A DNA stretch of 64,000 bases from Oculina patagonica (Eukaryota). The notes below the pieces were generated by a model that saw only the letters and a program-made list of their open reading frames with translations, searched no databases and had not been told where the DNA came from. The number at the start of each line of letters is the position of its first letter. The stretch's first letter is position 1. The position numbers and the translations under genes were made by a program. Positions 14,801-23,225 of the stretch are shown piece after piece. Location: assembly GCF_052425735.1 (NCBI RefSeq), contig NC_135771.1, positions 1,550,001 through 1,614,000 of the forward strand. Direction: 5' to 3'.

Positions 14801-14821
14801 AGAACATCCCTCTAACTCTAA

Positions 14822-15045
14822 AGCCTGGTTTCCCCTAGCGACGCAAGCGCAAGCGCAAGCGCAAGCGCAAGAACGCAAACAGTAAAAAAATGACCATTGT
14901 GCTTGTGCTTGACACAAGTTCAAGCATAAGCATCAAAATTCAATGTGTTTGTGCTTTTGCTTACGTCGAGGCCGTATTCACGGTGAAATTATTTATAGCT
15001 GTTATTCTTACGCTTGTGCTCGCGTCGCTAGTGAAAACCAAGGCT
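14822..15045. mobile_element. PIF/Harbinger-type MITE
   Basis: TAA|AGCCTGGTTTCCCCTAGCGACGC ... GCGTCGCTAGTGAAAACCAAGGCT|TAA; internal (GCAAGC)n. Confidence 0.75.
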
Positions 15046-15729
15046 TAACTCTTGATGAATTTGAATGCAAAGTAGAAGCTTTATGTCTTTTAAATCTCTT
15101 TTGACGATCATAATTTTATAAGTGTTATTTGTTTTTCTAGATAAATACGGATATCATCATTACTATTATTACTTTTATGTAAAAGCTAATTTATTTTTTA
15201 GGACAGCAAGGTTATTAGTTTTTTTTCTTGTTAAGTGCTACTCTCGTAAAAAAGCTTATCTTATCTTTCAGTATACAAACTACTTATAGAAGAAATTGAT
15301 TTCCGCCTTAATTTCCATATGTATGAAGGAAGCATCTAAACCTGTATTGATTCTCCCTGTGGGTATTTCTATTCAAGAACCTTTGAAAGAAGGGCTTGTA
15401 AGACTGACGGAGAGCTTATTAGTCATATTAGAAATCGTAAATAAGTTGTTGTACAAAGATTTGAGGTAGGGTTAGGGCGTTCAGTTCAGCCTTATGCTTT
15501 GTCAGGCAACGTTCTACCTCAGAACAACAATAAGAGAGAGATTTAGAACATTGTTGATGTGTAGTCGAATCGTCTGTCTAAATAGGACATCTGCTTCGCG
15601 GTCTTGTGATTTTGTTTAACCACTCCACTCAGTCCTATTACCATTATGAGTTGTCCTCGACTCATTCCAATAACTATCAGAAAATAAATTATGTACGGTA
15701 CTAGGAGATATGGAATTTATCGTCTTTCG

Positions 15730-15781
15730 ATCATCATCATCATCATCATCATCATAATAATAATAATAATAATAATAATAA
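15730..15781. repeat. Compound (ATC)n(ATA)n microsatellite at the Penelope insertion site
   Basis: Read directly; its right end overlaps the left TSD copy. Confidence 0.95.
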
Positions 15782-15866
15782 CATTTATGTCCATAATATT
15801 CGCTTTATAAAATATATACTATATACAAGGCTAAAAAGAGTTAAAATGGTAAAATTAATATGATAA

Positions 15867-15903
15867 AACCAAACGTTTTCGGCTGTTTGCCATCATCAGG
15901 GTT
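15867..15903 (-). ncRNA. Minimal type I hammerhead ribozyme (Penelope pLTR), copy 1
   Basis: AACC-CUGAUGA-uGGC aaaca GCC-GAAA-ACGUUU-GGUU: conserved core, 4-bp stem I, 3-bp stem II, palindromic stem III AACGUU. Confidence 0.85.
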
Positions 15904-15935
15904 GAAGAGACCGTCCGCACGCATGCATTTATATC

Positions 15936-18275
15936 TTATGTAATTCCCGTTGGGAAAAGTTTACTGACATAAGAAATGACTTGTTTGTTCAAACTGGGGC
16001 GGAATTGTTGGATCATTAGACCCTCAACGATTCTACGCTTGTGGAATGTCTGTGCTGAAGAGAGAACACGCCAGGTGAAAGAATGCGATGGGTTTTCCCG
16101 CAGGTGTTTTGCAGGTTCAGAGGTGTGAGCAGGATTTGAATGTTCCGCAATTCGCACTTCTAAATTTCGCACAGTCTCGCCAATGTAGTCAACCCCACAA
16201 GAACAATCTCCTTTGTAAACAACTTTGGATCTGTGAGTGTTTTTGTCTTTGTTATTAAAGAGGCTTTTGATGCGCCTTGTTTGCCACAGGATTACAAAGA
16301 TGAAGTTGAAATTAGTAAACTTGTTGAGTTTAGCAATAAACGTTTTACTAAGTTTTTCGTTTTTGCCGCAAAACGGGAGCTTGATGAAAACTTTCTTACG
16401 TTCTTCGAAGAGAAAATCTGGAATGATGTTGTCGTCTTGTGATGAGTCGGTTAGGAAGTTGTTGATTGTATGCGAGATAAAACGTTTCGGATAACCTGCT
16501 TCGATGAAAGAAGTTTCTAAAGTTTTAATGTCCTTCTCAAAATCGGTGGAGATTCGTTTGGCTCTATGGAGTGCGCCAGTGATGCAATTCCTTTTCCACT
16601 TGGTAGGGACCTCAGATTTCCAATGTGTTGGTAATTTCCCCGGTTTCTTAAAGACGCTGCAATTGAACTTGTTGGTGTAACTAAAGGCAGTATCAAGAAA
16701 GTGGTCGGGGTTTTCTTCGACAGTGAAAACAATGTTAGGGTGGTAGCGATTTAGGCGTTCAAGTAGAGCATCAGGCTCGCCCTTTTTCTTCTTAGAGAAA
16801 CAATCATCAACATATCGATCATAGAATGGTGGGTTGAAAGGTCGGACTACATCAGCTTCTAGTTTGGCCATGAAAATGTTAGCAAGGACTGGAGATAGTG
16901 GGTTGCCCATGCCGCATCCATCGATTTGTTTATAAAGCTTGTCGTTAAAACTGAAAACTGTATTCTTGGTGACATTACAGAGAAGACGTCTAAAGAGTAA
17001 CTTTGAGCTGAGTTGTGGTAGCTTGTTGTTGGTGTAGATTTCATTTATGATGTGGTCGATGGTTTCATCGAGCGGAACTTCAGTGAAGAGAGAGGACACA
17101 TCATATGATACCAAGACTTCGTCATCATCAACAGTTCTATTAGTTAGACGCTCAGCGAAATCGGTGGTAGTTTTGATGCTGTATTCATTCTCAGTGAGAG
17201 GGAGTAAGTAAGAGGCTAGGAATTTAGCTGTTTCGTAATAAAATGTTCCACAAGTGCTGACAATCGGTCGAAGTTTCAGATTGTCCTTCGTAATTTGCTC
17301 AGGGTTCTGGAATTTATGGGTTTTGGCAGTCCCATAAAGGAAAGCAGGCTGGTTTGATGTCGGCTTGATCTTATCCAAGGGCAGAGATGACTTGAAGTTT
17401 CGGGTCAGAAAATTTTGAAAAGATTTAAGGTCTTTTAGTGTGTTGTCGTCAGTCTCAACGTATTTACCGTTAGTTATGCCTTCTTGGATCATAGTTTCAA
17501 GTTTGTTGACGTAATCAGCACGTTGCATAATGACGACTGATGAATCTTTATCGCCGGAGAGGACCACTAAGTCGGGATCAGATGTTAGTTTTTGTAAGAC
17601 TTTGAAAGTGTAATCAGGAGTGTTGTGAATGTTTTGATTGAAGAGGTTAGAGTGGACGCGGAGGAAGTGTTTGAAATCTTCATGTTGGCAATCAGGAACG
17701 CTTGAGCTGACTTGGTTCAGAAGAAGTTCAAACTCCGACAGGAGGTTAAGTTTCACGTGCCGGTTCTTGTCGATGAAACTGTGGTTGAGGCCAAAACGTA
17801 AATAATGTAAAGTAGCATCCGCGATGACTTGACTTGAGAGGTTAATAATAGGTACTGAAAAGTCCTTCGGCTGATGTTTACTTCTCAGAAGTTTGGAAAG
17901 CTTTTTGTTCTTAGTGCAAAGAGAATCAAAACGTTCACGACGGAGGGATTTTGATACCATGCGATGTATAAGTTTGAAGGCGCCTGTTCCATGTTTAGAC
18001 ACGAAAGCCGTCCGGAAGGTTAAGAGGTCAGCATTGACACGGCGAAGCTTGAGGCTATGCTCTTGAAGGTTCGCTTTAAGGATGCTCTTTACAGCGGTGT
18101 AACGGTGATCCTCTGATGCGAAATTTCCATTCACTATGGCGAAAGTTGGTGTGCAGCGGTTCCACAGTGCTTTCTGTACAAATCCAATGCTAGCAGCGGT
18201 CCTTTGAAGTTTAGATGTTAGGTACTTCAATGTTTGATATGAAAAAGCGATGCCTTGAGGTAAAGGGATGTCCAT
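15936..18275 (-). CDS. Penelope-like polyprotein: reverse transcriptase + GIY-YIG endonuclease (779 aa)
   Basis: Motifs GDKDSSVVI, LYGTAKTHK, LRPIVS, SYDVSSLFT, QIDGCGMGNPLSP, RYVDD; GIY-YIG VVYKGDC...YIGET...RIAEH. The frame is uninterrupted. Confidence 0.97.
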   Translation of the reverse strand: MDIPLPQGIAFSYQTLKYLTSKLQRTAASIGFVQKALWNRCTPTFAIVNGNFASEDHRYTAVKSILKANLQEHSLKLRRVNADLLTFRTAFVSKHGTGAFKLIHRMVSKSLRRERFDSLCTKNKKLSKLLRSKHQPKDFSVPIINLSSQVIADATLHYLRFGLNHSFIDKNRHVKLNLLSEFELLLNQVSSSVPDCQHEDFKHFLRVHSNLFNQNIHNTPDYTFKVLQKLTSDPDLVVLSGDKDSSVVIMQRADYVNKLETMIQEGITNGKYVETDDNTLKDLKSFQNFLTRNFKSSLPLDKIKPTSNQPAFLYGTAKTHKFQNPEQITKDNLKLRPIVSTCGTFYYETAKFLASYLLPLTENEYSIKTTTDFAERLTNRTVDDDEVLVSYDVSSLFTEVPLDETIDHIINEIYTNNKLPQLSSKLLFRRLLCNVTKNTVFSFNDKLYKQIDGCGMGNPLSPVLANIFMAKLEADVVRPFNPPFYDRYVDDCFSKKKKGEPDALLERLNRYHPNIVFTVEENPDHFLDTAFSYTNKFNCSVFKKPGKLPTHWKSEVPTKWKRNCITGALHRAKRISTDFEKDIKTLETSFIEAGYPKRFISHTINNFLTDSSQDDNIIPDFLFEERKKVFIKLPFCGKNEKLSKTFIAKLNKFTNFNFIFVILWQTRRIKSLFNNKDKNTHRSKVVYKGDCSCGVDYIGETVRNLEVRIAEHSNPAHTSEPAKHLRENPSHSFTWRVLSSAQTFHKRRIVEGLMIQQFRPSLNKQVISYVSKLFPTGIT

Positions 18276-18347
18276 AATATTCGCTTTATAAAATATATAC
18301 TATATACAAGGCTAAAAAGAGTTAAAATGGTAAAATTAATATGATAA

Positions 18348-18384
18348 AACCAAACGTTTTCGGCTGTTTGCCATCATCAGGGTT
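18348..18384 (-). ncRNA. Minimal hammerhead ribozyme, copy 2
   Basis: Identical 37-nt motif, 2481 bp from copy 1. Confidence 0.85.
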
Positions 18385-18561
18385 GAAGAGACCGTCCGCA
18401 CGCATGCATTTATATCTTATGTAATTCCCGTTGGGAAAAGTTTACTGACATAAGAAATGACTTGTTTGTTCAAACTGGGGCGGAATTGTTGGATCATTAG
18501 ACCCTCAACGATTCTACGCTTGTGGAATGTCTTGTGGAATATATTTTATAAAGCGAATATT

Positions 18562-20901
18562 ATGGACATCCCTTTACCTCAAGGCATCGCTTTTTCATAT
18601 CAAACATTGAAGTACCTAACATCTAAACTTCAAAGGACCGCTGCTAGCATTGGATTTGTACAGAAAGCACTGTGGAACCGCTGCACACCAACTTTCGCCA
18701 TAGTGAATGGAAATTTCGCATCAGAGGATCACCGTTACACCGCTGTAAAGAGCATCCTTAAAGCGAACCTTCAAGAGCATAGCCTCAAGCTTCGCCGTGT
18801 CAATGCTGACCTCTTAACCTTCCGGACGGCTTTCGTGTCTAAACATGGAACAGGCGCCTTCAAACTTATACATCGCATGGTATCAAAATCCCTCCGTCGT
18901 GAACGTTTTGATTCTCTTTGCACTAAGAACAAAAAGCTTTCCAAACTTCTGAGAAGTAAACATCAGCCGAAGGACTTTTCAGTACCTATTATTAACCTCT
19001 CAAGTCAAGTCATCGCGGATGCTACTTTACATTATTTACGTTTTGGCCTCAACCACAGTTTCATCGACAAGAACCGGCACGTGAAACTTAACCTCCTGTC
19101 GGAGTTTGAACTTCTTCTGAACCAAGTCAGCTCAAGCGTTCCTGATTGCCAACATGAAGATTTCAAACACTTCCTCCGCGTCCACTCTAACCTCTTCAAT
19201 CAAAACATTCACAACACTCCTGATTACACTTTCAAAGTCTTACAAAAACTAACATCTGATCCCGACTTAGTGGTCCTCTCCGGCGATAAAGATTCATCAG
19301 TCGTCATTATGCAACGTGCTGATTACGTCAACAAACTTGAAACTATGATCCAAGAAGGCATAACTAACGGTAAATACGTTGAGACTGACGACAACACACT
19401 AAAAGACCTTAAATCTTTTCAAAATTTTCTGACCCGAAACTTCAAGTCATCTCTGCCCTTGGATAAGATCAAGCCGACATCAAACCAGCCTGCTTTCCTT
19501 TATGGGACTGCCAAAACCCATAAATTCCAGAACCCTGAGCAAATTACGAAGGACAATCTGAAACTTCGACCGATTGTCAGCACTTGTGGAACATTTTATT
19601 ACGAAACAGCTAAATTCCTAGCCTCTTACTTACTCCCTCTCACTGAGAATGAATACAGCATCAAAACTACCACCGATTTCGCTGAGCGTCTAACTAATAG
19701 AACTGTTGATGATGACGAAGTCTTGGTATCATATGATGTGTCCTCTCTCTTCACTGAAGTTCCGCTCGATGAAACCATCGACCACATCATAAATGAAATC
19801 TACACCAACAACAAGCTACCACAACTCAGCTCAAAGTTACTCTTTAGACGTCTTCTCTGTAATGTCACCAAGAATACAGTTTTCAGTTTTAACGACAAGC
19901 TTTATAAACAAATCGATGGATGCGGCATGGGCAACCCACTATCTCCAGTCCTTGCTAACATTTTCATGGCCAAACTAGAAGCTGATGTAGTCCGACCTTT
20001 CAACCCACCATTCTATGATCGATATGTTGATGATTGTTTCTCTAAGAAGAAAAAGGGCGAGCCTGATGCTCTACTTGAACGCCTAAATCGCTACCACCCT
20101 AACATTGTTTTCACTGTCGAAGAAAACCCCGACCACTTTCTTGATACTGCCTTTAGTTACACCAACAAGTTCAATTGCAGCGTCTTTAAGAAACCGGGGA
20201 AATTACCAACACATTGGAAATCTGAGGTCCCTACCAAGTGGAAAAGGAATTGCATCACTGGCGCACTCCATAGAGCCAAACGAATCTCCACCGATTTTGA
20301 GAAGGACATTAAAACTTTAGAAACTTCTTTCATCGAAGCAGGTTATCCGAAACGTTTTATCTCGCATACAATCAACAACTTCCTAACCGACTCATCACAA
20401 GACGACAACATCATTCCAGATTTTCTCTTCGAAGAACGTAAGAAAGTTTTCATCAAGCTCCCGTTTTGCGGCAAAAACGAAAAACTTAGTAAAACGTTTA
20501 TTGCTAAACTCAACAAGTTTACTAATTTCAACTTCATCTTTGTAATCCTGTGGCAAACAAGGCGCATCAAAAGCCTCTTTAATAACAAAGACAAAAACAC
20601 TCACAGATCCAAAGTTGTTTACAAAGGAGATTGTTCTTGTGGGGTTGACTACATTGGCGAGACTGTGCGAAATTTAGAAGTGCGAATTGCGGAACATTCA
20701 AATCCTGCTCACACCTCTGAACCTGCAAAACACCTGCGGGAAAACCCATCGCATTCTTTCACCTGGCGTGTTCTCTCTTCAGCACAGACATTCCACAAGC
20801 GTAGAATCGTTGAGGGTCTAATGATCCAACAATTCCGCCCCAGTTTGAACAAACAAGTCATTTCTTATGTCAGTAAACTTTTCCCAACGGGAATTACATA
20901 A
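18562..20901 (+). CDS. Penelope-like polyprotein, second identical copy (779 aa from MDIPLPQG)
   Basis: Translation is identical to the minus-strand copy. The extra 35 N-terminal residues in the ORF track (from 18457) come from reading across the inversion junction. Confidence 0.97.
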   Translation: MDIPLPQGIAFSYQTLKYLTSKLQRTAASIGFVQKALWNRCTPTFAIVNGNFASEDHRYTAVKSILKANLQEHSLKLRRVNADLLTFRTAFVSKHGTGAFKLIHRMVSKSLRRERFDSLCTKNKKLSKLLRSKHQPKDFSVPIINLSSQVIADATLHYLRFGLNHSFIDKNRHVKLNLLSEFELLLNQVSSSVPDCQHEDFKHFLRVHSNLFNQNIHNTPDYTFKVLQKLTSDPDLVVLSGDKDSSVVIMQRADYVNKLETMIQEGITNGKYVETDDNTLKDLKSFQNFLTRNFKSSLPLDKIKPTSNQPAFLYGTAKTHKFQNPEQITKDNLKLRPIVSTCGTFYYETAKFLASYLLPLTENEYSIKTTTDFAERLTNRTVDDDEVLVSYDVSSLFTEVPLDETIDHIINEIYTNNKLPQLSSKLLFRRLLCNVTKNTVFSFNDKLYKQIDGCGMGNPLSPVLANIFMAKLEADVVRPFNPPFYDRYVDDCFSKKKKGEPDALLERLNRYHPNIVFTVEENPDHFLDTAFSYTNKFNCSVFKKPGKLPTHWKSEVPTKWKRNCITGALHRAKRISTDFEKDIKTLETSFIEAGYPKRFISHTINNFLTDSSQDDNIIPDFLFEERKKVFIKLPFCGKNEKLSKTFIAKLNKFTNFNFIFVILWQTRRIKSLFNNKDKNTHRSKVVYKGDCSCGVDYIGETVRNLEVRIAEHSNPAHTSEPAKHLRENPSHSFTWRVLSSAQTFHKRRIVEGLMIQQFRPSLNKQVISYVSKLFPTGIT

Positions 20902-20933
20902 GATATAAATGCATGCGTGCGGACGGTCTCTTC

Positions 20934-20970
20934 AACCCTGATGATGGCAAACAGCCGAAAACGTTTGGTT
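20934..20970 (+). ncRNA. Minimal hammerhead ribozyme, copy 3
   Basis: aaccctgatgatggcaaacagccgaaaacgtttggtt, 32 nt after the ORF stop. Confidence 0.85.
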
Positions 20971-21100
20971 TTATCATATTAATTTTACCATTTTAACTCT
21001 TTTTAGCCTTGTATATAGTATATAATAACATTTATAGTGCGCAAGTTTCATAAAGTGTTCAAATGCGCATTACAAGATTAAAAATGGAATAAAAAAAGGT

Positions 21101-21206
21101 AAAAGCTAAAATTACAATTAAGAGTAAACTTACAATGAATTTAAAAAGCTAAAATTACAATTAAAGGTAAACTTACAATGATTTTAAAAAGCTACAATTA
21201 CAATTA
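21101..21206. repeat. ~43-bp tandem repeat, about 2.5 copies
   Basis: aaaagctaaaattacaattaagagtaaacttacaatgaattt repeated with few changes. Confidence 0.85.
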
Positions 21207-23225
21207 TTAAAAGTAGAATACATTACTGACCATCCCACCAGTGAGAGCACAGAGCTTTATTCAATGATGTTGCCCATTGGTGAGTTCCGCGGCTCATTCA
21301 CCGTGGGAAAGTGATCTCGCTCAAGCTGGTCACACAAAGCACATTTTTAAGAAAGGAAAGTGAAAAGGTTTTTCATGATAATACAACTGATTTAAGTTTA
21401 AGGGAAATTCGTGCACAGAATGTACTAGCTGACGGCCCGGTCTCACAACTGGCTTCTTCTTAACTCAAGAAACATCGAGTCGCAAAGCGGTAAAAACGAC
21501 GGCTTAAATTCGCTTTTAAGAAGAAAGAAAACGTCTGGGAACATGTAAGTAGCTGAGTTTTCCGCACGCACACGTCATGATAAACACGTGGGAACCTGGA
21601 AACCTCAAAATAATAGTTTTCTAAGGCAGAACTGAAAACATCAAAGAAGTGCTAATCAAGGATGGTTACGGTTGAGAAAGATTAACACGGATTACAGGGG
21701 CGTAACCAGTTATGCTGCTTTTTTTGGATCAAGACTCTCGAAACCGAACGACCTTCACCTTCATTTTGTGCTGATGTTATGTGTATTTTACAGCACCTAA
21801 ATTAAAATATTTTAAAGGAAGGAATTGCGCCAGTTTTCACTCATTCCAAAGTGAACCGTGAAATTGTCTTTTCCGGCGCATGCAATTGTGCGTTTGTCTG
21901 TCGCCTGGCTAGTCTAGAAGGATCCCGAGTTTGCAGTTCAGTGCTAGATGATCTCATCGCGAACGGGTAGTTTCGAAATATATAATGCTAAGGTACGTTA
22001 CAAATGTCTTTCTATTTCATCTTGAAAGCGTTTCAGCCTGAATTTTTTTAGTCGTACCTTACGGTCTTTTCAAAATACGAGCGGGTCGAAAAATTTGTAG
22101 GCCCGAGCCTACGGGCCTGAAGGCTAGCTACGCCCCTGGTACAAACAGGACAAACTTGAAAAAATTGGCCAATCTTTTCAGGACGCGCTATCCGTGACGT
22201 GACTAGCTGTAACTTGCTCCTTCAAAGAACGAGCGTGATGGTAACGAAACACTCAGTATGTTCCGAACGAGCGACTGGGACCGAAAGCGGACATCAAAAA
22301 ATCTTTTTGTCAGTAATGTTACTTTTTGGGCCGTTTGGATAAAGAATTTCGTTAAACAGTTCGTGTTGGTTTTAAACTATGTGCATAACGATATTTACTG
22401 TTTATAATTATATAAACATCGATGTTAAACTCTTTTTGTTATTCAAATTTTTACCACAATTACCCAATAGATCTCAGGTTGTCAAGGCAAATATCGCCAT
22501 TGAAAATGTTGACGGTTTTAAAATAATAGGAAATTCTATTTTTACTGTTTCGGCAGTGATAACGATTGAAAACAATTTGTTATGCACGGAATTTAAGATC
22601 GAGGTTGAAAAGCAAATATCACAATCACGAAAATACTTTGCAAATGAAACAGAACAAAAGAAGAAATTTTTGTAATTGTTAGTGGAGGTCTAAATGAAGA
22701 AATATTGGTTAAGCTCTTTTCTTTGTTGATAAAAAAAGAGAAGACAATATTTTTACATCTGGACTAAACAAGCATGATTAATTAGATTTGTCATATGTTT
22801 CTTACATATAAAAAGGCCAGGACTTGCGCCAGCGGTTCAGATGAAAGCAAGTGCACATTTTGATTTAACTGGTCCGTGCGGGAAGCAGAAAAACGATGCT
22901 TCTTTTCGGCTGTACGTTGTTCCACTTTTTAGACTTCTATTATTTTATGTGTCTTGAGAAATGACTACTTTAACAAGAGGTTACTGTTCCTTTTATTGTG
23001 CCACGCTTTAAGTTTTATTTCACATTGAGCTGGGAAGGGCTGAGAAGTCTAAATGTTTCCAGTCTGGTGTTTACTTTGTAATCAAGTTTTCCGTTTGCAC
23101 TGGATTTAGAGAAAAATCGATGGGCTATCGACTTAGCAAGTCACCATTGTAACATTGAAATATAATCACTAATACATGCTTTATATTTTACCAGGAGCAA
23201 CTGATAACTCTGACGGAAGGTAAAA

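Follow-up and report, generated by a model that had tools for sequence, protein, structure and literature searches.

How two complete copies of a Penelope-like element (PLE) come to stand head to head within one target site is the question raised by a locus of the coral Oculina patagonica, which lies in the window analysed here, i.e., the whole stretch of 64,000 nucleotides at positions 1,550,001 to 1,614,000 of contig NC_135771.1 (assembly GCF_052425735.1). Published proposals on how PLEs integrate, and on why they form both tandem and inverted repeats and carry a tail on one side only, include self-priming and resolution by the endonuclease. The coral family provides a clean natural data set for these questions, with dozens of young insertions bracketed by target-site duplications (TSDs), an empty allele and one locus at which both arms are full-length. 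We conclude that the window locus likely arose when an active, canonical PLE with a C-terminal endonuclease retrotransposed once, with both target strands acting as primers.

Structure of the inverted pair

The whole locus is a near-palindrome of 5.25 kb holding two intact ORFs (Table 1; positions within the element unit carry the prefix u). The inverted pair described from the sequence alone is real. Its arms, 15813-18298 on the minus strand and 18539-21024 on the plus strand, are 2486 nt each, 100% complementary and separated by 240 nt, and the alignment of the arms, which had been named as a check, showed the left and right units to be 100% identical. The spacer of about 240 bp proposed in the sequence-only reading stands as a distance but not as unique sequence, because 234 nt of it is a partial element unit. 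The stretch 15787-16051 is repeated exactly at 18268-18532 with a spacing of 2481, so that 18299-18532 is an extra partial unit in left-arm orientation, the pseudo-LTR (pLTR) of the left copy. The filler at the head-to-head junction forms, together with its neighbours, a repeat of the 9-mer TTGTGGAAT, whose other copy lies 12 nt upstream, and this repeat would be a scar of template switching or stutter. The outer ends are asymmetric: the left copy is 26 nt longer, and the right copy ends 5 nt into the next unit.

Identical arms are not resolvable with short-read contigs, and none of the contigs listed in the comparison with one arm, the centre and the right flank bridges the centre. The right junction is spanned at 21001-21084 by an 84-nt short-read contig of run X1 with 0 mismatches, of which only 24 nt lie on the element side.

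Table 1. Coordinates of the paired element copies, their coding and motif features and the target site within the window
Feature	Position	Strand	Remarks
Compound (CAT)n(AAT)n microsatellite, left flank	15730..15782		Read directly; insertion at its 3' edge
Left TSD copy ATAATAACATTTAT	15775..15788	+	Direct 14-mer; last 2 nt may be tail
Tail	15787..15817	-	31 nt, u1-31 of next unit; ends 5-7 nt beyond ATG; left arm only
Left full unit	15818..18298	-	2481 nt, period 2481; 100% identical to right unit
Minimal hammerhead-like motif, copy 1	15869..15905	-	AACC-CUGAUGA-stem II-GAAA-palindromic ACGUU-GGUU
779-aa ORF with RT and very likely GIY-YIG, left arm	15936..18275	-	Intact
pLTR of left copy	18299..18532	-	234-nt partial upstream unit, u2248-2481; bulk of the "spacer"
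Minimal hammerhead-like motif, copy 2	18350..18386	-	Within pLTR
Filler TGTGGA	18533..18538		6 nt, head-to-head junction; sole non-element part of the "spacer"
Right arm	18539..21024	+	Full unit u1-2481 plus 5 nt (u1-5); without tail and without direct pLTR
779-aa ORF, right arm	18562..20901	+	Intact and identical; arm 100% identical to left unit
Minimal hammerhead-like motif, copy 3	20932..20968	+	From motif search
Right TSD copy ATAATAACATTTAT	21022..21035	+	Direct 14-mer; first 3 nt may be element

Encoded protein and hammerhead-like motif

That the locus carries a PLE with two intact and identical coding units, as had been claimed, is borne out by the RVT_1 match, the homologues and the layout of pLTR, tail and TSD. 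The right-arm ORF was listed as 814 aa (18457-20901) owing to an upstream in-frame ATG in the centre. RVT_1 was the only Pfam match for the whole ORF (E=2.3e-7, 31.2 bits with a cut-off of 29.6), and the C-terminal piece gave a GIY-YIG match below the cut-off (E=0.0022, 18.7 bits with a cut-off of 22.6). By sight, the C-terminal part shows the motif VVYKGDCSCGVDYIGET..R..EH..H...E...N (VVY...CxC...YIGET...R...EH), and the 779-aa protein, to judge from its residues, very likely contains a GIY-YIG domain. The homologues numbered 192, many of them of 780-830 aa with RVT_1; the full-length ones are 780-811 aa at 99-100% coverage, and more distant ones bear PF01541. Homologues with RVT_1/GIY-YIG domains come from corals, ctenophores, fish and others. 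The Penelope/Poseidon clade, as distinct from Neptune, Nematis and Hydra, has no CX2-5CxxC linker upstream of GIY-YIG and retains the CCHH residues (two Cys within the endonuclease core, His after it). Read by eye, the coral protein has only one Cys in the linker region and shows a CxC...H...H pattern, which would argue against Hydra, where CCHH is missing, and against Neptune, where the CX2-5CxxC linker occurs. The complex prediction for two copies of the N-terminal residues 1-330 (score 0.00, pLDDT about 53) speaks neither for nor against a dimer.

The hammerhead-like core consists of CUGAUGA, a stem II of 3-4 bp, GAAA, a palindromic ACGU replacing helix III and a helix I of 4 bp. It was found by motif only, since the Rfam scan of 15000-22000 at E<=1 returned no family. 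The core is kept in element copies down to about 70% identity and appears to agree with the description of the min-HHR (PMC4209133).

Target site, empty allele and age

The element inserted where an (AAT/ATA)n microsatellite ends, in agreement with the sequence-only reading, and the target can be written as (AAT)n-ACATTTAT. The true duplicated target is 9-14 bp because 2-3 nt of microhomology is present at each junction. The earlier claim that one 14-bp TSD surrounds the pair was supported by the empty site, which has a single 14-mer and not both. This site is on contig C1815 of the same Oculina patagonica assembly, where (ATA)n is followed by a single 14-mer and then by the right flank, which is 96.6% identical; the contig starts within the microsatellite and is taken as allelic to the window locus from the right flank only. 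Its (ATA)n is longer than the microsatellite at the filled locus. The same empty-site arrangement was seen in a contig of X25, an independent sample (RNA by guess only), whose loose end has ATAATAATAATAATA directly before 21022. Inspection of the centre and the junctions showed no internal TSD flanking either arm alone. An empty site with one 14-mer indicates that the insertion was a single event and is polymorphic.

All 12 differences that set the window arms apart from the remaining full-length copies are common to both arms, and paired arms with the same haplotype point to a shared source. Seven of the window's substitutions (u280, 290, 694, 714, 813, 1253 and 1254; five non-synonymous) are private, being in both arms and absent from every other copy covering those sites. 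Short-read contigs show only the majority haplotype at the seven sites, which is uninformative because contigs drop minor variants. A very recent insertion, as the sequence-only reading had it, is plausible rather than proven, since these shared private substitutions also fit an older insertion whose arms have been kept identical by arm-to-arm gene conversion between the 2.5-kb inverted repeats. Such an origin would also agree with the divergence of 3.4% in the flank between the filled and empty haplotypes within the assembly, which makes them old enough for an old polymorphic insertion. We nevertheless regard gene conversion as unlikely: no unconverted difference is left in the 2 x 2486 nt of arm sequence, the two copies of the TSD are identical, and a source sub-lineage missing from the haploid assembly accounts equally well for the private variants. 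The arms of two other pairs (L014 and L021) are also 100% identical, as expected of a recently active family, and those of L039 differ at only 2 sites.

Horizontal transfer was considered from the comparison of organisms A and B, which differ by about 0.45% in the element and about 4% in the flank, and was rejected because the organism's own haplotypes already differ by 3.4% in that flank. As the sequence-only reading proposed, the palindrome might give rise to dsRNA that feeds small-RNA silencing, and might be a fragile site. A small-RNA run of a related organism (X21) is uninformative on small RNAs: of its 6.9 million reads only 2 matched, and these are 75 nt long and run into unlike letters, probably untrimmed adapter.

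Family-wide pattern

The genome of Oculina patagonica shows the same layout at more than 20 independent loci, which are spread over 12 chromosome-scale contigs plus one that is unplaced. Head-to-head pairs with both 3' ends outward make up about 24 of the 25 resolvable insertions, and a TSD of 10-16 bp brackets the whole pair in 19 of the 20 tabulated pairs. Of the 25 resolvable insertions, about 24 carry a tail of 27-34 nt at one end and none at the other, where independent site choice would give about half (P <1e-6). The arms range continuously in length from about 18 nt to full; the 3' end is kept in all of them, and 5' truncations are frequent and independent within pairs (e.g., u2305 vs u276). 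One further locus combines a full-length arm with an arm of about 2 kb, another copy has a pLTR of 512 nt, and intact ORFs are present at at least three loci. The pair centres show either overlaps of 0-9 nt or fillers of 6-36 nt copied from both adjoining arms. ATT follows the TSD directly in 8 of 19 oriented targets. An apparent asymmetry of the target strands (C before the TSD in 9/19, G after it in 1/19) was rejected, because maximal extension of the TSD biases those positions. The arm without a tail is the longer one in 14 of 20 pairs, not a significant excess.

The view of the inverted full-length arm as an oddity among PLEs, put forward in the sequence-only reading, has to be given up, because the inverted arms form a continuum in this genome and the inverted-copy layout has already been published (PMC8557442, PMC3846280). 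The window locus has the ordinary PLE layout of inverted copy, pLTR, ORF and tail, with an inverted copy that lacks 5' truncation. It is an extreme form of the known inverted-pair architecture and not a new kind of structure.

Origin of the inverted pair

Under priming from both target strands, the reaction would start with a staggered break of about 11-14 bp at the edge of the (AAT)n, and both 3'-OH ends would prime reverse transcription of element RNA, on one RNA molecule or on two. The top-strand end would begin the left arm at the tail site (about u29-31, just beyond the ATG), and its cDNA would comprise the full unit and 234 nt of the preceding unit. The bottom-strand end would begin the right arm at u5, some 26 nt further upstream in the RNA, and copy one unit. 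The cDNA ends would then be joined head-to-head at the centre via microhomology or a template switch, leaving the 6-nt stutter. Neither cDNA would be truncated in this order of events, and for this reason the near-palindrome holds two intact ORFs.

The inverted arm might instead have been made by snap-back, in which a single cDNA folds back or an antisense template primes itself. Self-priming from palindromes at inverted junctions has been argued for the Penelope elements of rotifers (PMC3846280), and the nearly symmetric arm ends of pair L014 (u1436 vs u1422) could be read in the same way. This mechanism predicts a common inner endpoint and a second arm truncated at its outer end, but both arms always reach the 3' end of the element, the inner endpoints lie up to 2 kb apart, the outer ends fall at two separate, fixed sites, and the centre of the window locus is asymmetric, with its 234-nt pLTR on one side only. 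We consider snap-back very improbable; the pattern across the family argues against it and for two fixed RNA sites at which both strands of the target act as primers. Two successive insertions, the second copy homing in opposite orientation to the pLTR or 5' end of one already in place, would fit the cutting of their own pLTR region by PLE endonucleases in vitro (PMC11167929) and the documented nesting of PLEs (PMC3846280), but can hardly be maintained when there is no TSD per arm, when the 14-mer bracketing the whole pair is single in the empty site, and when a one-tail-per-pair rule not expected of independent events holds at about 24 loci. An assembly artefact, from a collapsed repeat or from a long read that is chimeric or folded back, is just as hard to believe in, even though perfect palindromes are a known class of artefact and short-read contigs cannot resolve such arms, because the flanks are two different unique sequences with a common TSD, the centre and outer ends are asymmetric exactly as in real PLE insertions, more than 20 independent loci have the same layout, and the X1 contig matches the right junction exactly.

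With two-strand priming as the preferred origin, the pair of two full arms may, more tentatively, represent the complete product of a concerted two-ended reaction, in which one PLE ribonucleoprotein would use each start site of reverse transcription (u5 and about u29-31) once, one per target strand. The ribonucleoprotein would possibly be a protein dimer on one multimeric RNA. If so, the inverted dimer would be the default integration product of PLEs and the commonly seen forms its truncations, and the one-tail-per-pair rule, together with the identical haplotypes of paired arms, would be the first in-vivo constraint beyond the in-vitro data. Perfect 5-kb palindromes of this type should be treated in annotation as genuine PLE products, and not as artefacts for removal.

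Comparison with known systems

In the twin priming of L1, reportedly described by Ostertag and Kazazian in 2001, both ends of a staggered break prime and leave an inverted 5' segment in one TSD-flanked insertion. Annealing of the second primer is internal to the same RNA, which makes the two segments neighbouring parts of a single copy without redundancy, and L1 relies on an APE endonuclease and poly-A priming. The coral pairs would resemble this process in the priming by both break ends, the one TSD and the microhomology at the internal junction. Unlike L1 segments, the coral arms are fully redundant and both start in the 3' region of the element, with internal initiation proposed and, very likely, a GIY-YIG endonuclease; L1 and the coral element belong to different classes. 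Since the arms are redundant and both reach the 3' end, the coral pairs are no case of twin priming of the L1 type, although the proposed mechanism is analogous.

PLEs typically have a pLTR, an inverted copy with 5' truncation and, on one side, a tail of 30-40 bp (PMC8557442, PMC3846280). The window locus shares with a typical EN+ PLE insertion (Pen2a_Av of Adineta vaga, PMC3846280; Fig. 2 of PMC8557442) a single ORF with RT and, very likely, C-terminal GIY-YIG, the pLTR, the inverted copy abutting the 5' end, a one-sided tail of about 31 bp, a TSD of 8-14 bp that encloses the entire structure, a candidate hammerhead-like motif in the pLTR and AT-rich or microsatellite targets. The inverted part there is pLTR-sized and 5'-truncated, whereas the inverted arm of the window locus comprises an entire unit whose ORF is intact, so that two coding copies are present. 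The coral unit is also short (2481 nt), and its tail ends just 5-7 nt after the start codon.

In vitro, the purified protein of PAc, a Poseidon element of Anolis, cuts both strands of the target and extends them, with a preference for AT-rich/ATT sequence (PMC11167929). Its reverse transcription begins at two neighbouring internal sites of the RNA that are some 30 nt from each other and mark the limits of the tail. The coral layout fits this reaction: the family would likewise have two start sites that delimit the tail downstream of the hammerhead-like motif, and it has AT-rich/ATT targets. The start sites of PAc lie 111-118 nt into the ORF, whereas in the coral u5 is 19 nt before the start codon and u27-34 are 3-11 nt into the ORF. 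PAc uses its start sites in vitro without strand preference, but in the coral genome the two ends of an insertion use different sites, one each.

Structure of the head-to-head pair

The pair of identical Penelope-like element (PLE) copies at 15787-21024 was delimited by a repeat scan, which gave two inverted arms, 100% complementary and separated by 240 nt, and a direct 14-mer, ATAATAACATTTAT, at the two outer ends. The sequence-only reading had described two arms with the same intact 779-aa ORF, bracketed by one 14-mer, and the repeat scan, ORF list and translation agree on this; the right-arm ORF is listed as 814 aa because of an in-frame ATG upstream, in the centre. Its ~240-bp spacer, on the other hand, proved to be part of the element, as 15787-16051 is an exact repeat of 18268-18532 at a spacing of 2481. 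When unit coordinates (u) are set with u1 at window position 18539 and a period of 2481, the spacer consists of the 234-nt partial unit, i.e., the pseudo-LTR (pLTR) of the left copy, and a stutter scar, TGTGGA, whose 6 nt are the sole non-element letters between the arms and, with neighbouring letters, form a second copy of a 9-mer located 12 nt upstream. The outer ends of the pair are asymmetric, with a 31-nt tail (the start of the next unit) on the left and u1-5 on the right. The ORF occupies u24-2363, and the tail therefore ends 5-7 nt beyond the ATG.

Features of the PLE pair and neighbouring repeats (window coordinates)
Feature	Position	Strand	Length	Remarks
Inverted arm, left	15813-18298	-	2486 nt	
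Inverted arm, right	18539-21024	+	2486 nt	
Left side		-	2746 nt	u2248-2481 (partial upstream unit, pLTR) + full unit + u1-31 (tail)
Right side		+	2486 nt	u1-2481 + u1-5
14-mer, left	15775-15788		14 nt	
14-mer, right	21022-21035		14 nt	
Left-arm ORF	15936-18275	-	779 aa	uninterrupted
Right-arm ORF	18562-20901	+	779 aa	identical frame
Stutter scar	18533-18538		6 nt	
Minimal hammerhead-like core	20932-20968	+		by motif
Minimal hammerhead-like core	18350-18386	-		by motif
Minimal hammerhead-like core	15869-15905	-		by motif
Right-flank repeat	21036-21220		~185 nt	at least 10 further genomic copies, 92-95% identity; 43-nt tandem duplication at 21101-21186
Repeat	14819-15050		~230 nt	>40 copies, 78-89% identity; ~50-nt ends match in both orientations, MITE-like
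Dispersed repeat	21720-22140		~420 nt	at least 25 copies, 75-83% identity

Identity of the element

The ORF protein matched RVT_1 in Pfam (E=2.3e-7), and GIY-YIG scored below threshold on the C-terminal 149 aa (E=0.0022); the pattern VVY...CxC...YIGET...R...EH is clearly visible in the translation. Among the homologues returned are full-length proteins of 780-811 aa that align over 99-100% of the query; RVT_1 is present in many of them and GIY-YIG in some. The best named match (99%) was an Oculina patagonica protein. CCHH is present and the CX2-5CxxC linker absent, and by this motif pattern the element looks more like the Penelope/Poseidon type than Hydra or Neptune (types as in PMC8557442). 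No hammerhead was reported by Rfam; a motif search found a minimal core, AACC-CUGAUGA-UGGC..GCC-GAAA-ACGUU-GGUU, which is retained in element copies down to ~70% identity and matches the min-HHR with palindromic helix III known from PLEs (PMC4209133).

Layout of the family in the genome

The genome was searched with one arm as query and 40 loci were tabulated, which shows that the layout in the window is the rule for this PLE family. About 24 of 25 resolvable insertions, including a relative at ~70% identity, are head-to-head pairs with both 3' ends outward and unrelated 5' ends (e.g. u2305 vs u276), and single-arm insertions (L003, L008) are a minority. A TSD of 10-16 bp surrounds the entire pair in 19 of 20 tabulated pairs. 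The tail (27-34 nt) is found at exactly one outer end and the opposite end terminates at u1-5; with independent choice at the two ends, mixed pairs would make up about half, and the probability of all being mixed is <1e-6. The sole exception is an old, decayed event in three copies with the same flanks (C1:12104431, C10:13317379 and C4:26802323), and thus copied within a larger repeat or duplication; it alone has an atypical tail, of 17 nt. Inverted-arm length ranges from ~18 nt to full length, and one other locus, C4:39469643-39474224, combines a full-length arm with a ~2-kb arm. Pair centres show overlaps of 0-9 nt or fillers of 6-36 nt assembled from pieces of both adjoining arms. Tandem duplications of one arm's inner end, of 134 nt (C4:21831922-21832977) and 67 nt (C4:39472152-39472218), lie at two head-to-head junctions and are a larger version of the 6-nt stutter in the window. 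The targets are AT-rich, two or three being (ATA)n repeats, and ATT directly follows the TSD in 8 of 19. At the window locus, the (ATA)n may be part of the right-flank repeat.

Origin and age of the pair

The junctions at the window locus show no separate TSD for either arm alone. A second assembly match to the right flank lies on the 2944-bp contig C1815, which reads (ATA)n, one 14-mer and the right flank at 96.6% identity, and begins within the microsatellite, so that the left unique flank is not included. The empty site thus holds one 14-mer rather than two, which upholds the earlier claim of a single insertion. In addition, C1815 has a 1259-bp insertion (1602-2860; window equivalent ~22558) that is absent from the window, and the contig therefore looks like an alternative haplotype without the Penelope pair; the 3.4% flank difference indicates high haplotype divergence here. 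Likewise, in another sample of this organism (X25), a contig has ATAATAATAATAATA immediately before 21022.

The arms match at all 2486 nt, and there is no difference between the TSD copies either. Intact full-length copies are also present at two other loci, C4:51463603 and C4:39469643; they are mutually identical, and 12 sites separate them from the window haplotype (7 non-synonymous, 4 synonymous, 1 UTR). At 7 of these sites both arms carry an allele that no other copy covering the site has, which shows that both arms derive from one source lineage. These shared private alleles would also be compatible with an older pair whose arms were made identical by arm-to-arm conversion. The "very recent" insertion first proposed is likely but not proven. 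Near-identical element copies (18539-21024) were seen in runs labelled as three other organisms, B, C and D (0.5-0.73 of 31-mers shared), and a 1552-nt contig among these data has 7 differences from the window element, mostly matching the majority haplotype of the O. patagonica genome, which marks this as a young family common to close relatives.

As to how the inverted arm arose, self-priming (snap-back), as in PMC3846280, predicts common inner endpoints and variable outer ends, whereas the family shows the opposite; we therefore favour two-ended target-primed reverse transcription. In Frangieh et al. 2024 (PMC11167929), both target strands were cut and extended by a purified PLE protein; reverse transcription began at two neighbouring internal sites of the RNA, which bound the tail, and AT-rich/ATT DNA was preferred.

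An assembly artefact is argued against by different flanks sharing one TSD, by the PLE-specific asymmetries of the pair and by the recurrence of this layout at >20 independent loci. The check drew on Logan contigs and a single small-RNA run: an 84-nt contig from the best DNA run matches 21001-21084 with no mismatch, and no centre-bridging contig was among the Logan contigs listed, which cannot span identical arms. Two reads of the small-RNA run, from a related organism, matched; its 75-nt reads run into unlike letters, probably untrimmed adapter.

Comparison with known PLEs

The palindrome noticed in the sequence-only reading is real and well resolved; its interpretation was partly right. For EN+ PLEs, Craig et al. 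2021 (PMC8557442) and Arkhipova et al. 2013 (PMC3846280) described just such a layout as typical: a pLTR formed by partial tandem insertion, an adjoining inverted copy truncated at its 5' end, a tail of 30-40 bp confined to one end, and a TSD enclosing the entire insertion. The window locus has the same architecture, but neither of its cDNAs is truncated; it thus lies at the far end of a continuum already known, as a further and maximal instance of PLE architecture.
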